A DNA stretch of 64,000 nucleotides from Dimorphilus gyrociliatus (Eukaryota; Animalia; Annelida): positions 1,230,570 through 1,294,569 of the forward strand of contig CAJFCJ010000019.1 of NCBI GenBank assembly GCA_904063045.1, in the 5' to 3' direction. Shown here one piece after another: positions 15,445 to 25,126 of this stretch. Positions within the stretch are counted from its first letter, which is position 1. The number at the start of each line of letters is the position of its first letter. A program made the position numbers and the translations under genes. The notes under the pieces are model-generated. The model saw only the letters and a program-made list of their open reading frames with translations, was not told where the DNA came from and did not search any database.

Positions 15445-18400
15445 TCTTGCTATATTAATCGTACATGCATATAACAAGTATATAAATATTTCTAGTTTAT
15501 GTATCGCTGCACCCATGACACTTAAAGATAGATGTAAGAAGATTAATAAAACTGGAATAACATCCTATTGTAAGCGCGAAATACATATGACGTAGGGTCT
15601 ATGTACTTGTAATAAAAAAAATTAGTGTTTCTGAAACATTCTAGAAGCATATGAATATTTTAGTGGAGTATGCATCTATATAATAGTTGAAGTAGATCTA
15701 TTGAATAGCATGATTCATAATCCTATATGTTTAATAGTAAGTTAGTATATAAGAAATATATATAGATATATACATGTACACTATATAGGTGATATAAATA
15801 GATAGGTACCATTTATATTTATACATACATACATACATACATATATACTGTATATATATATATATATATATATTTGATTGAGTATACGTATTTATGTAAA
15901 TATATTGCATATATATATACATATTGTATGTAAAGTATTTAAATACTATTTCTATAGACATTTATACATTGATGTTTTGTTTGAATATTGAATAGTATTA
16001 AGATATTTATACATTCATTTTTCATATATAAATACATACATACTATAAATATAGATCAGGCACCTACAAAAGAATAAATTGTACATAAGCCTATGAAACA
16101 GTTATATATATATATATACTAGAGAGTGTGTGAAACACGTTTTATTATATTTAGGATATGAACGAAAGTATCTGGAACGGGGCAATCGATTTGTGTCATA
16201 TGTTATTATATGGAATCTCTCGAGTTAGCTCAGGCTGAAAGAGGCGTAATTTAATATTAAAAAATCAAGTGGCTGTTGAGTCTGAACATCCGGGTCTGTA
16301 GCAGCTATAGCTGTTCGGTTCGAATTACAACTGCAGTTGCAAGAAATAGCCTATAGAAATATATAGCAAGCGCTATATTTCTAACCATCTTGTAGGCGCC
16401 GCGTTCCTATAGTAACCCTAACAGTGGACAAACTATAGGCCGCTTACGTGATTGATAGCCTTTGGAGTGGAGAGGACGAAGGAGGGAGAAGAGTGGGACG
16501 TAAACCCACATGAATAAAACATACAATAAACGCATACATAACGTATTACTTACTCAGTCTGGTCGTTTTCGAATACCAACTGGCCCGAAGCATCGAAGAA
16601 ATCTCTGCCGTTACCCTTGGCCGTGCCTTCTATAGTTGTATAGGGTACAATAACCTTTCCACGTGCTCCCGATGAACGGCAAACCTTTATTTCCGCTTCT
16701 CCTACCGATTCGGATACAGACATTGTCGAACCTTCAAAATGAAAGATGCCTGCATGATCGTCGTCCAAAATCATAACAGTTGCCATTGATGGCATGACCA
16801 ATTGAGCTACGCTATTTTGATCTCCGCCATAACCTGGAACGCGTAGATTGTGCAATTTAACGTAAAAGTGCTCATCCTCTTCGAATATATCATCATCAAT
16901 AATGGTAACAGAGAATTGACAGTGCATCTGACCCGGTTGAAATTCCAAAGTTCCGCTGGCAAATTCGTAATCCGTTCCGGCGTTAGCTGTTCCATCTTCT
17001 GTCACGTAATCGACTTGTATAACTCGGTTTGTGTCTCCCCCGTGTCTGGAGACTGTCAATTGAAAAGTGCCAACATTCTCCATAACTGTATAATGACCAG
17101 GCTCAAAGAAGATTCGGGTGACGTTATCATCATGATCCAGATCAAGTTTGACATCCTCCAAAGACGAACGACGTTCGACTTTACTCTTTTTTATGACATT
17201 TCCGCCACCAGTCAACTTTCTTGTCGCCTGTATCCGGTAGAAAGCACGCGACTTCGGACCTCTATTCATAGCTTCCATTTCTGCCATTTCTTCCAATGAT
17301 TTCATATCCAAATTAGGATGCTTTTTACGAAGTTCGCGTAGAATATCGATAAAATCCTTACGGTGCTTCTCGAACTCTCGAATTTCCGTATCGTCACTGT
17401 CTAATCCTTTAAACGTGATTGCATCTTCAGAAGCCGAACCAACGTGATTTCTCTCCGCTAATTCCAAATCTCCGTCGACCTGTATTGATTTCCTTCCATG
17501 GCGGCTTGCATGGTACTTCTTATTCATAAACTTCATAAAGAAGATTTTCCTATCGGCTATATATGCTGTTAAAACGGTTGCGGGGAAGAAGAGAAATGTG
17601 AGAACAGCTTCCCAAACTTCTACTTCACCCTTGGAGAAACCGGCGATAATGATATATAGCCACAGATAGGCGAATATACTCCATGTTGCGGTTATAAAGA
17701 AAACCCGTAAATGTTTAATTCGTCGGCAATCCCCGTCAGGTATAACGTATATGCATAAACCAATGATTATGAACAGGTTAAAAGCTGCTGAACCAACTAT
17801 CGTACTAGGCCCTAATTGTCCAGCTTTAAAGTCATTACCAACGATTTCGATAATCGATAATAAAATCTCGGGAGCCGATGAACCTAACGCCATAAGTGTC
17901 AAATTCGATACTGTCTCATTCCAAACTCGGACATTTACGACCGTTGTTTCACCGCTTGGCAGTTTAATAGTGATTTCGCGTTCTTTCGACGTAATCACTT
18001 CAATAGCGGCCATGAATCGATCGGCTATTATCGACACACCGAGAAACATGAAAATCATCGCCGCCATATAAACTGTGGCCCTAGCCGCCTTGTCTCCAGC
18101 AGAAAGATTTTTTTGCGGTTCCCACAGAGGCAAAATGACCTAAAAATCAATATTTCGTTTACGTATATTGCTTACACACATATATAAAATATATATGTAT
18201 ATACATATTTACATGCATACTGTTCGCCCAAGTTTATGTACGTTATTTATACAATATGTATCATATGTTTTCTCAATACCTTGTATATGGATAACATGTT
18301 TTTAAGCTCTCCCTATTAGACTACCATTATAGTTCTATCGACATAAAGACATCGTCTAGTGGCCTAATGTTATAGTGACAAGATGGATAAAAGTTTGATT

Positions 18401-19658: not shown

Positions 19659-20513
19659 ATGGAAAGCCAAGGGGAATATCGAACGTTAAAAGATAAGTTT
19701 AGGGATGAATGGCACAGAAAAGATCGAAAAGTGACAGATGACAGTTTGGGAAAGTTTGGTGTTCTTTTCTTCTGGATTCAAACTATCTCCTTGACAATCA
19801 CAACTATTTTATGGACATCGCCATCGTCATTATACACTCTTTTAAGCACTTACCTGCTCATTCAGGTATCTGTTAATTGGTATCTTTGTTTTAATGAAAG
19901 AAATAAGGTTGTCAGGGGTATTGTACAGCCTGATAACGCTGAATTGATAGGATGGACCATGTGTGTTAAATGCCAAATGATGCGACCACCCCGGTCACAC
20001 CACTGCTCATACTGTAAAGTTTGCGTTCTCAAAAAGGAGCTTCATTGTTTTTTACTAAATAATTGTGTGGGAGTCTTCACGCAACGTCGATTTATTATAC
20101 TCTGTTTTTATACAAGTATCTCATCGTTGATTGGATCCGTTTTCAATTTATTATACGTCTTCCCACGTTTAGAATTTGCTGATTATCTTCCGTTTTTTGG
20201 TGTCCTTCGATATTATCTCTATGGGAAAATTAATTTGGGAGATATAATACTGGTAATGCAAGCCTATGTTACTATCATTACCTTAGTCGCTTCATTGCAC
20301 TTTCTCTTCTGGCAAGTGTTAATAGTCTATCGAGGTCAAACATCTTATGAAGCCTTCAGGAACATCAACCGTTATCGGCTAGATAGCCCACTAATTCACA
20401 TTAGGCAAGTGTTTGGGCAATTTTGGTTTCTTCATTTCTTCATCCCACTGCCATTGCCAATCGATGCCGACGGTGTTTCATGGGAAAGACACAAGTTCGA
20501 AAAAGGATCTTAG
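19659..20513 (+). CDS. Intronless DHHC-family palmitoyltransferase-like protein (ZDHHC22/24-like) with ELHC in place of DHHC
   Basis: CVKCQMMRPPRSHHCSYCKVCVLKKELHCFLLNNCVG cysteine-rich domain, four hydrophobic helices and a TTxE-like QTSYE motif. Confidence 0.85.
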   Translation: MESQGEYRTLKDKFRDEWHRKDRKVTDDSLGKFGVLFFWIQTISLTITTILWTSPSSLYTLLSTYLLIQVSVNWYLCFNERNKVVRGIVQPDNAELIGWTMCVKCQMMRPPRSHHCSYCKVCVLKKELHCFLLNNCVGVFTQRRFIILCFYTSISSLIGSVFNLLYVFPRLEFADYLPFFGVLRYYLYGKINLGDIILVMQAYVTIITLVASLHFLFWQVLIVYRGQTSYEAFRNINRYRLDSPLIHIRQVFGQFWFLHFFIPLPLPIDADGVSWERHKFEKGS

Positions 20514-21032
20514 TTTATCATTTATATGTAGCTTTATTTACAAGAATGTTTCCTTTCTTTTAATAAATTGCCATTGAAAACAAAAAAGAAATCGATATTA
20601 TTGCTGCTTTATTGGGTTGAAACTTTTAAGTCAATACAACAAAGCCAACATAACATGACCCGGACTGCATATACTTTTCTTGAGATAGCAAAGTTTGTCT
20701 CATAGCAAGTGTAAATTGATATTTTAAAAGAAAACGATTATTTACAATTCGGAAACAGTTACGAGGCGAGAAATTAATGAGACAACACAAATGTCGTATA
20801 AAACAAAAAAAAAAAGGAATGTTAAATTCTCGTTAACACAAATAGAATGCATATATATCAACATCATCCTCATGAAAGAAAAATAAACGAAACAATCATC
20901 TAGTTCGCAACTAGATCAGATAATTTAGAAAAAATGAGCCAATGTTATTCTTTTCTTATTATTCATACTAAGAAGTGTCTTTGTTTAAGTATTTGTTATT
21001 TTTTAACTCTTTCCTATCCTCAACTGGATTTT

Positions 21033-24000
21033 CTACAATTTTACTTCGAAAGTTTTCTGAGCATTGCCCATTTCAACAGCGAATGGATTAGTGGGGGCTA
21101 CTGGTGCTTGAGGAGGCCCCCTAGGTTTTGCCCCTACCCAGGCGGCGTCAAAAGGGTCGAAACCCGATTTATTGGGGACGGTTGGTTGATGGCCAAATAC
21201 AGACGTTCCTGCTGTATCGACCGATTGGCTGCGATTATGCTGATTTGCAACGTAAGAAGTTTTAAACGGGTTCGTTGATACTGTTTGCAGCCAAGTTTCT
21301 CCATCTGGCCGTCGTTCCTCTTTTTGCCAAGGATTAGGGTGTCGAATCGGTTCGGGTAATTGCACTGATTTGGAATTACTTTCTTGTTGGTAAACTAAAA
21401 AAAAAGTTCAATTATAATTTTAATACTCTTGGTTATTGATCGTTTACTTACTGGTCGCTTTGGTAGTTACGTGATTGACAGTATTTGGATTAGTTTTCAG
21501 AGGTAAACTTGCCAAATACGGATCATCCTCGTTCACATTCAACCCACTCGAAATCTGCTTACAAATATCAGAGATTGATGCTTCTGCTTCTTCTTTTGAT
21601 GGAGAAGCTTCAGGAATAGTATGCACACTGAAGCCATTCGGGTAATTGGTGTCCCCGCCTTGCCTTTCTAAAGTTGATGGAAGGTCTTCCAACCGAAGTG
21701 AGTGTTGGCGTTTAAAAGGAGAGGATTTTTGACTGAGTTTTTGAAATCCCTTAAAGGATCCCTAAACGCAAGAAGGAGAAAAAAAACATTTGATTAGTAA
21801 AACTCAAGACAATAAAAAGCGAACATTGTTTTAATTTAACACCAAGCAAAACTTTTCACACATACACACAATTTTCAGGCTTTAATGGAAAGGTGATCAA
21901 GGAGTTTTGTAAAGTGACTACATACAGCTAATATATATATATATATAAATCTATAGAGGGAGGGTTAAAAAATAATCTCTTACCAAGTGCTGAATAGGCG
22001 AAGAGCGCGAAGAAAGGGAAAAAAGATATTTTTTATAAGAGAAGCCTTAATATATTTATAAATTTGATATTATAGTATATGATACTATAACTAAACTTAC
22101 CTGTCTGATTAGCATATCCTGGGAAGCATGGGGTCTTTGTACAGCGTGTGGGTTTTGTATATTTTTTTCAGGCACAGGATCGGCAATAAGCGCTGCCTGA
22201 GGATCTTCAAGACGTTCAGTTAAAGTTGTTTGTTTAAAAGATCCGGTTCTCGTAAAACTAGTTCCTTTTTCGTTATATGTTACTTGAACATTCGAAGCAT
22301 CTTTATCCCTTTTTTGCTTCTTTTCTAAACATAGTCCAAACGCACATCCTACAGCATGAGATAATCTCTCACCAGATTCTTTAAGAGCCAAAAATCCGTG
22401 GCACATCCATCTGCGAGATGTTCCATCTCTACAGATATATGCAAATCCCTTTTCATGTGCTCTATCCGGAGCGCAAAATGAAACTTTCTCTATAGTTTGA
22501 TCAACGATTAATCCTTTACTTATTTCGTCAACTACTCTTAAAGCATCACCGCTAACGTATAAAATAGCTCTTTGGTATTTTCCCTTGCACTGCTGAAATA
22601 ATGAAAAAACTTAATTAAAGAATTAGCTCAATAATCCTCTATATATAACAATTAGATTAGTAGTTCTTTTTCTGTTGGAAAAAGGGAAATAGTTTGTTAT
22701 AAATTAAAGGAAGCAAGCTCCACTAAAAAATCATAAAAATAAACATAAATTCTAAAAAAGCAGACGCTTGATGGTTAGATCAGTTTTTTATTAGCTGTTT
22801 TTTTTCGCCCCCTTTTGCTCTTACCGGCGTATTTACACGATCGTCTTTTCTTTTTCGTCGGGAACTCATTCGAAAGGACATTCTTTGCCAAACAGAGCGA
22901 GATTTTTTCTGTAACACAACACCTTCACTAACTTGAAAAGGCATGCAATGGACAATGTAAAAAAAAAATTGTTTCTTGTTTTTTTTTTGCTCAGTTTTGT
23001 TAGTTAAGTTTGTCTTCTTTTGCAAAGGGTAGTTTAGAAGGTTATGACAAACTGGTTAAAAGAGAATTAACAACAAAGAAACAATATTAAATAACAAAAT
23101 AACTGTTGGGAGAAGGGGAAAAAAATATGACAAGTACAATATAAATAAAAAGAATAGAGAATTTTTACAGCTGATGTAATAGTAGAACAGTTAAAAAATT
23201 ATCTCTTATCGTTTTCGATAAGCTTGTTTAGATAGGTAAAGATAAGCGGACAAAGCACTGATATTAATTTACAGAACGGAAGCATGAATATGGAAAATGG
23301 TTATATGGAAAATAGTCTTAAACGTTAAATACACAGTAAATAGATATGATAAAACATTGAAAAATGATCTGAAATATGAATAATATCAAGAAACTATTAG
23401 TAATATATAAAATAAACAATTATGAGTTTTCAAACTGAATAATAAATACAGATATCAAAATATATGTATTAATATAGTTATGTAGATGTATCGTTGCAGA
23501 TAGTTATTTGTATGCTATCTATTAATAATTTAAATATAGTAAAGGTGAGTTTATATCCTTTTTTTATAGTTAAGAAAATATGCAATGATACGTTAGTCTC
23601 ATTAGAAAAATGATCAAGAATGGTTTAGTATTACACAATACAATGTGATAAGAGTCGGAATATGCTATATAGAGATTTGATAGAAAACTAACCGCTTTTA
23701 GGGCTTTCACTGCTTCTTCGCAGACCTGCATACCTCTCGATTCGAATACTTCCACGCACCCTAGATACTGTTTAGATAAACGTTAAATGGATTAAGGAAA
23801 ATTTAATTCAGATTAAGAGTTATCTCCTAGGACAAAAATGAACTAAAATTAGATCAAATTCCGATATAAAGATTGACCAATATCAAAGTTCAATGATAGT
23901 TTATTACAACTAGCTTATTTTATGCTTACCCGAACTTGAAACGAGCAAGAGCCTTCTCTGACTTTCTTTTCATCTTCCTGCCATTGATGAGGTTTGGATG

Positions 24001-24055
24001 ACTCTGGTATATGATTTCTTTTCTTTCGGAAACTAAATTTTCTTAATTTATCCAT
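21033..24055 (-). CDS. NUMB: Numb (PTB-domain endocytic adaptor)
   Basis: [29 protein letters not shown], then [23 protein letters not shown], the PTB core and RQ|GSFKGF...KRQHSLR. DPF and NPF motifs present; C-terminus KTFEVKL. Confidence 0.97.
21984..21989 (-). other. Candidate 6-nt Numb microexon (His-Leu)
   Basis: Pyrimidine-rich ttcgcctattcag|CACTTG|gtaaga inside intron 21762-22100, phase 0-0. Confidence 0.7.
22825..22908 (-). other. Candidate 84-nt Numb PTB-insert cassette exon ([28 protein letters not shown])
   Basis: gtgttacag|AAAAAATCT...ACGCCG|gtaaga; phase 0-0, between the KALKA and QCKGKYQRA exons. Confidence 0.7.
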
Positions 24056-24402
24056 TGTCTGATGAAAAATAGTAGAATTAATCCAAAATTAACAACTACA
24101 TACAACGATTTGCTAAATAATGTAAACAAATGACACAACAGGATCGGGATTTTACCCGAGTTTTACAGGTACAACAATGATCGGCGATTGGAGGACGCAC
24201 ACCTTTTTTTTGGCCAAGAAGTTTTTATTAAACAACAACTGTAGATCATTACCTCTTGTTCAAATTTGTCTTCAGTGGAGTTAAAGGAGCTATACTATCT
24301 TGTAACCAAATCAATATAAAGTGATGAAAACATGCCTTCTCGATGAATAATCCTCGAAAACGATTAGTAAAAAATTCTCATACGATACGCCATAATTTCT
24401 AA

Positions 24403-24434
24403 CGCATGCGCAGTGATTCCCTATAGGTGGCGCT
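24403..24434. promoter_or_regulatory. NRF1-like (CGCATGCGCA) and CTCF-like (TAGGTGGCGC) motifs in the NUMB/IAP divergent intergenic region
   Basis: Motif matches by eye. A second NRF1-like TGCGCATGCG lies at 52155-52164 in the SRSF/GRAMD1 intergenic region. Confidence 0.45.
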
Positions 24435-25126
24435 GTAAAAAATACGAATGGGCTAATATTGTTGTCCAACTTTTGTCGACTGATTTTTTCAATTGTTATT
24501 AAGTGTTTGGTTCAATGTACTATTGATATTATCTGCAAATTGCGCAGAAACACTTAACACAATACTCAGACCGCATATATTTTAATATAAACAAAGCGAG
24601 AAAGTATCACAGACGTACACTTTGTCTCAAAATAATCAACGGAATACAATAATATAAATTTATATTTAATTATGTGTCTACAGATGAAATTATTAAAAAA
24701 ATTTGATTAATAAATTCCTTAGTCATTATTTATCCAATAAAAATAGTATTTAAAATAAATATATATATAAATTTCAAATTATCAACTTGGTTTTCGTAAA
24801 ATAACCTTGACCTCTCGCTAGAAAGTAAATTCGTTTAAAACACAGGACATAGTTTCTTTGGGGGCAAATAGTTATGTGTCATTATCATTACTAACAGTTT
24901 ATTTTATTATTCATATTGTGTTGCTTAGTGAAATTAACCTATTATAGTAATAGAACACTATTTTCTTATTTCTCTGTCTTAGCTGTATTAGCTATAATTT
25001 CCAGCTGTTTCCAGCTTGTATTAAAAAATTCTTTTTTGTATTATGGTTGAAATATAGACCAGTTTTTTTTAATAATTAATTTTCTATTTCATTTACTTAG
25101 AACTTCAGGAAACTCATCTCTCTATA

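Follow-up and report, generated by a model that had tools for sequence, protein, structure and literature searches.

Numb carries two phospho-acceptor serines, in RQGS and KRQxS contexts, that together make up a well-conserved element in the regulation of asymmetric cell division and cargo-selective endocytosis. The arrangement L(-5)-x-R(-3)-x-x-S-F(+1)...F(+4) is a classical CaMKI motif with a basophilic, PKC-like character; CaMKI needs a basic residue at -3 and PKC prefers one. Both Numb serines are phosphorylated by CaM kinase, and phosphorylation of the pair recruits 14-3-3, frees Numb of alpha-adaptin and shifts it away from the cortex into the cytosol (PMC9856935). Ser7, Ser276 and Ser295 are conserved PKC sites that control Numb partitioning (PMC9545709). 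In vertebrate and fly Numb this switch is operated by kinases alone, whereas at the locus described here, from the annelid Dimorphilus gyrociliatus, the spacing by which kinases recognise the first site is also altered by splicing.

The alternative exons of vertebrate NUMB comprise a 33-nt PTB insert and a ~145-nt insert in the proline-rich region (p65, p66, p71 and p72). To our knowledge, none of the known Numb isoforms alters the RQGS site. The worm gene is likewise diversified by alternative splicing, having an 84-nt basic cassette in its PTB region, and it also contains a microexon of 6 nt at the first phosphosite. Irimia and colleagues reportedly described in 2014 a microexon of the same length in the PTB domain of APBB1. 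The worm exon resembles the frame-preserving microexons of vertebrates and insects (3–27 nt) in being a tiny cassette with a length that is a multiple of 3, strong splice sites and a long pyrimidine tract, in adding one or two residues at an interaction or regulatory surface, and in being conserved together with its flanks. Unlike them, it has no UGC enhancer, represents the major form in whole-animal RNA and sits in what is probably a lineage-specific intron, so far seen only in dinophilid-type worms. A literature search combining Dimorphilus gyrociliatus with microexon gave no match, and three papers that mention Numb, microexons and aPKC together deal, to judge from their titles, with different subjects. 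Our explanation as a whole, which we consider slightly more likely than not, is that a genuine cassette microexon generates two Numb forms that would differ in the phospho-control of the first site.

All positions refer to the window, the whole stretch of 64,000 nt of contig CAJFCJ010000019.1 that was analysed. RNA from four of the five runs identified was mapped to window 20500-24600 as assembled contigs. Run X1 is a coral metatranscriptome, X3 represents organism A, which is 90–95% alike and belongs to another lineage, and X5 represents organism B, which is 100% alike and whose contigs are identified as RNA because they are spliced at every intron. The exon model (Table 1) was built from the joints in the RNA contigs and translated exon by exon. 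Exon E5 is delimited by joints at 22592 and 22101 and is covered by contigs 22101-22593 in X3 and X5, and exon E7 is delimited by joints at 21761/21762 and 21452. With both alternative exons included, the protein comes to ~484 residues.

On the combined weight of its domains, motifs and matches the gene is Numb. Exon E7 matches Pfam NumbF (PF06311) over profile positions 18-94 (E 2.7e-20; 73 bits vs a cut-off of 27). A search with the ORF of exon E5 returned fragments of exon size only, among them a 155-aa ORF (P0001) in the genomic DNA of a relative (contigs L001-L003). This ORF is 99% identical over exon E5 and contains a PTB/PID domain (PF00640), which exon E5 by itself does not bring to the Pfam threshold. 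The best full-length matches, from molluscs, annelids, brachiopods and arthropods, are named numb or numb-like. An N-terminal basic MxKLRxxSFRKK and C-terminal DPF and NPF motifs can be read in the exon translations, the latter two being the motifs through which alpha-adaptin and EH-domain partners are bound.

Exon E4 is spliced alternatively in X2 and X5, where both the included form (joints 22592->22825 and 22908->23693) and the skipped form (22592->23693) are found. X5 also contains a minor form, 22880-23368, in which E4 is extended into the intron as far as an alternative acceptor at 23368 (joint 23368->23693). Its depth is ~57 vs ~500, and it may represent an unproductive transcript or intron retention.

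Table 1. Exons of the worm Numb gene and elements of the intron that hosts the microexon (window positions).
Feature	Position	Strand	Remarks
5' UTR exon	from 24253 upward	-	at least 348 nt
E2	23930-24058	-	129 nt; ATG at 24055
E3	23693-23767	-	75 nt
E4	22825-22908	-	84 nt; alternative cassette, very basic, PTB region
E5	22101-22592	-	492 nt, 164 codons; C-terminal part of PTB and start of NumbF region
Upstream half-intron	21990..22100	-	111 nt; donor gtaagt at 22100; removal shown by RNA contigs joining 22101 to the microexon
Pyrimidine tract of upstream half-intron	22031-21992	-	80% C/T; then acceptor ttcag, 21994-21990
E6, microexon CACTTG	21984..21989	-	6 nt, His-Leu, phase 0; RNA contigs and relative's DNA
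Microexon donor gtaagaga	21976..21983	-	within a 16-nt block (21991..21976) identical between window and L001
Downstream half-intron	21762..21983	-	222 nt; acceptor gtttag at 21767-21762
UG-rich intron block TTGTGTGTATGTGTGAAAA	21853..21871	-	112 nt downstream of the microexon donor; identical in L001
E7	21452-21761	-	310 nt; both phospho-acceptor serines and the rest of NumbF
E8	from 21394 to stop 21035-21033	-	359 nt coding; ...DPF...NPF...TFEVKL

Exon E7 aligns to the Numb phosphopeptide that was crystallised with 14-3-3 (PDB 5YQG chain E, E 2e-5). By this alignment the first serine of the exon is the homologue of vertebrate Ser276 (Ser265 in mouse, Ser264 in rat), and the second, which lies 19 residues on in a KRQHS context that fits SPFKRQxSLR, is the homologue of Ser295 (284/283). 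The worm protein thereby shares with the vertebrate aPKC/CaMKI-14-3-3 switch the same serines, the same flanks (LxRQGSF[RK]GF...SPFKRQxSLR) and the same spacing. That RQGS and RQHS form a pair of kinase/14-3-3 sites had been given as established in the initial annotation, and the site homology agrees with the published roles of these residues (PMC9856935, PMC9545709).

On the minus strand, the upstream Numb exon (...DMLIRQ; ATG CTA ATC AGA CAG) stops at 22101 and is followed by a 339-nt intron (22100..21762; gtaagt...gtttag), after which the next exon opens at 21761 with GGA TCC TTT AAG GGA TTT (GSFKGF). The hexamer CACTTG lies inside this intron at 21989..21984 in the context ttcag-CACTTG-gtaaga. 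It is directly preceded by AG at 21991-21990 and a pyrimidine-rich 40-mer and directly followed by GTAAGAGA at 21983-21976. The position of the intron between LIRQ and GSFKGF and of the hexamer within it had been reported correctly in every coordinate and letter, and translation confirms that inclusion gives RQ-HL-GS in frame (QDMLIRQ-HL-GSFKGF), the microexon adding His-Leu in phase 0. A length of 6 nt (within the 27-nt limit), a preserved reading frame and canonical AG and GT are the features of a cassette microexon. Such a configuration is rare in this DNA. A strict filter (AG, at least 14 pyrimidines in 20, 3–30 nt in frame, no stop, GTRAG) returned five sites in 128 kb (both strands of the window), or ~0.013 expected per 339 nt, and CACTTG is the sole candidate within the intron.

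The consequence for the first phosphosite follows from the two translations. In the skipped form, LIRQGSFKGF, the acceptor serine has Leu at -5, Arg at -3, Phe at +1 and Phe at +4. In the included form, LIRQHLGSFKGF, the Arg stands at -5, as had been anticipated for a two-residue insert, and a His at -3.

The RNA contigs show that the hexamer is spliced. In X1, X3 and X5, which come from three studies, AAGTG (plus strand) stands between the two sides of the joint 21762->22101. The plus-strand C at 21762 together with AAGTG gives CAAGTG, the reverse complement of CACTTG, and the contigs therefore read E7, microexon and E5 exactly. The junction AGACAG-CACTTG-GGATCC, which had been singled out as the one to look for, is thus present in assembled contigs of all three runs. 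The most extensive is the 595-nt contig from X1, which reaches 108 nt to one side and 482 nt to the other and contains one mismatch. In X2 no contig spans the microexon junction.

The six letters could in principle reflect a paralogue, misassembly or a processed copy rather than splicing at this locus, given that the data are assembled contigs rather than raw reads and that the shorter side of the junction measures only 30 letters in two of the three microexon contigs. Such an artefact is highly improbable. The X1 contig spans the junction broadly, contigs from X5 match the window at 100% identity, what is inserted corresponds letter by letter to the intronic hexamer between AG and GT, three independent studies agree, and the hexamer and its splice sites are kept in the genomic DNA of a relative. 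On these grounds the artefact or paralogue origin was rejected. It is almost certain that the microexon is real and is spliced into mRNA.

The microexon is also, in all likelihood, alternative rather than constitutive, as judged from one run. In X5 a single contig, with 27 letters on its shorter side, joins 21760 to 22100, skipping 339 nt and lacking the microexon, and this joint is found in X5 only. In X1 and X3 the form with His-Leu (+HL) is the sole form found. The depths of the two X5 junctions, 532.9 for inclusion and 176.1 for skipping, add up to approximately that of the upstream exon contig (704.9), which suggests inclusion in about three quarters of transcripts (~3:1), contig depth being a poor guide to isoform proportions. 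X5 also yields an unspliced contig, covering 21734-22129, at ~1/10 of exon depth. By this rough contig depth, +HL is the major form in whole-sample RNA and the canonical RQGS form is the minor one. The initial annotation had implied the opposite, with RQGS as the default and the microexon creating a special 'off' isoform. This relationship is reversed, since +HL dominates (~533 vs 176 in X5).

Dominant inclusion bears on two other readings of the exon. One is a neural microexon of the bilaterian neuronal programme, dependent on eMIC/SRRM and included in neurons only. The size of the exon and the preservation of frame fit such a programme. However, no UGC occurs within 70 nt upstream of the acceptor, none is seen in the aligned L001 stretch, and majority inclusion in whole-sample RNA is unlike a neuron-only exon of a broadly expressed gene. 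We consider eMIC dependence improbable and, with UGC absent and inclusion the majority form, dropped it as the lead.

The other reading accepts the microexon as real and regards it as neutral or near-constitutive. Here an exonisation within a lineage-specific intron would have added two tolerated residues to a disordered linker, skipping would be splicing noise, and the phosphosite would be either unimportant in the worm or still used. The dominance of inclusion in X1, X3 and X5 and the detection of skipping in one run only are in keeping with this. The skipped junction nevertheless accounts for about a quarter of the depth in X5, which is more than a trace.

Exon E5 was searched against 1.84 billion cluster representatives, and a mollusc Numb against a 5.8-billion collection. 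Of the Numb proteins whose site could be identified, ranging from cnidarian-like sequences to vertebrates, 216 of 216 have [RK]Q followed directly by [G/A/S/T/N..]S. None of the 216 has an insert between [RK]Q and S, in a survey where clusters collapse isoforms and annotation often misses such exons. A protein search with exon E7 returned the ORF of the relative only and no fragment containing RQHLGS. Within this survey, the placement of a microexon between the residue that confers kinase specificity and the acceptor is unusual, and the invariance of the spacing makes a neutral insert at exactly this point unexpected.

The probable youth of the exon, on the other hand, favours neutrality. An intron between RQ and GS is absent from the Numb genes of Aplysia californica (L006), Capitella teleta (L008), Paralvinella palmiformis (L009) and Lingula anatina (L010), which read CAG-GG.. 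(or CAG-TT..) contiguously. The initial annotation had suggested a search of further annelid or mollusc Numb introns for the microexon. The three genomes checked from these groups, and the brachiopod Lingula besides, have no intron there in which it could lie. A marine animal from a TARA metagenome (L004), also recovered with exon E5, does have a 125-nt intron exactly there, between RQ and (A)S (L004:1363-1487), composed nearly throughout of GATGAT-type repeats and lacking a microexon. Because four lophotrochozoans are without the intron and that of L004 is without the microexon, the worm intron is probably a lineage-specific gain at a CAG-G site, or a rare retention, and the microexon probably a young exonisation inside it.

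The Paralvinella gene reads RQFSFRGF instead of RQGSFRGF (L009:28584-28631), contiguously, a rare replacement of the residue that precedes the conserved serine (-1). Such a departure from RQGS in another lineage is again in line with a neutral insert.

Conservation among close relatives weighs against it. Between the window and the relative's contigs the flanking exons are 86–87% identical in DNA, with third codon positions at 62–66%. The intron is 282 nt long in L001 vs 339 nt in the window and is 67% alike over the columns that align, a further 73 columns being gaps. The two introns share just two identical runs of at least 9 nt, AGCACTTGGTAAGAGA (21991..21976) and TTGTGTGTATGTGTGAAAA (21871..21853). 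The first, of 16 nt, consists of the acceptor AG, the microexon and the microexon donor, and the microexon with both splice sites is the same letter for letter in the genomic DNA of L001-L003. Identity of the exon and its splice sites against diverged synonymous sites is, in this comparison, a mark of selection, and its perfect preservation where synonymous sites are nearly saturated is difficult to reconcile with neutrality. The conservation spans close relatives only, the microexon being found in RNA of two lineages and DNA of a third. The second run is a UG-rich block, which is a candidate splicing-control element and a candidate site for a UG/GU-binding factor. Taking the evidence on both sides together, we regard a neutral or near-constitutive microexon as unlikely, if by no means negligible.

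Our preferred reading, of two forms that differ in phospho-control, gives the following model. The microexon is flanked by a strong acceptor (a long pyrimidine tract and cag) and a strong donor (G-GTAAGA), and the two half-introns are short enough that each is probably recognised across the intron, requiring no help from a 6-nt exon. Efficient inclusion of so small an exon would thereby be possible without a special factor. By rough contig depth, the microexon is included in most transcripts and skipped in a minority, giving LIRQ-HL-GSFKGF and LIRQ-GSFKGF, respectively. The +HL form would be a poor aPKC/CaMKI substrate at its first serine, leaving the second site, KRQHS, untouched. High-affinity binding of 14-3-3 draws on both phosphoserines. 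Bound to 14-3-3 through the second site only, the +HL form would be less readily released from alpha-adaptin/AP-2 and from the cortex. The isoform balance would in this way govern the extent to which polarity and Ca2+ kinases displace Numb.

That +HL weakens the phospho-switch is plausible, at or a little below an even prospect. Since +HL is the majority form, the worm seems to run mostly on the altered site, and this speaks against the mechanism, in that either the site may be mostly dispensable in the worm or its kinases may tolerate the insert. The broadest claim, that dinophilid worms evolved splicing-level control of the Numb polarity switch by means of a microexon in a newly gained intron, is tentative and on present evidence somewhat doubtful. 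If it were true, cells could choose between an RQGS Numb, open to stripping from AP-2 and the cortex by aPKC/CaMK and 14-3-3, and a resistant RQHLGS Numb, and the asymmetric segregation or endocytic activity of Numb could be made specific to a cell type or stage with the kinases unchanged.

The microexon is known from one small worm group and its effect is read from the protein sequence. The two natural isoforms nevertheless differ by two residues only, and the pair offers a test of the share of the first site in cortical release and 14-3-3 binding. The exon also illustrates that 6 nt can be included efficiently in a short-intron genome, that protein annotation may miss exons of this kind, and that a young intron is able to alter the wiring of a highly conserved motif.

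The median intron of the species is 66 bp, and its splicing is adapted to short introns (PMC7854359). The host intron of the microexon, at ~5x this median, has the greater length that is expected of an intron carrying functional elements. The last intron of the gene (21395-21451), with joints in X1, X3 and X5, measures 57 nt, a size typical for a genome with very short introns. The window has a low G+C content and compact gene spacing. These traits, and the presence of the sequence in marine and coral-tank metatranscriptomes, fit Dimorphilus gyrociliatus. The gene order NCX exchanger, DHHC palmitoyltransferase and Numb (the first two at window 16550-18133 and 19659-20513) is kept on the relative's contigs L001-L003.
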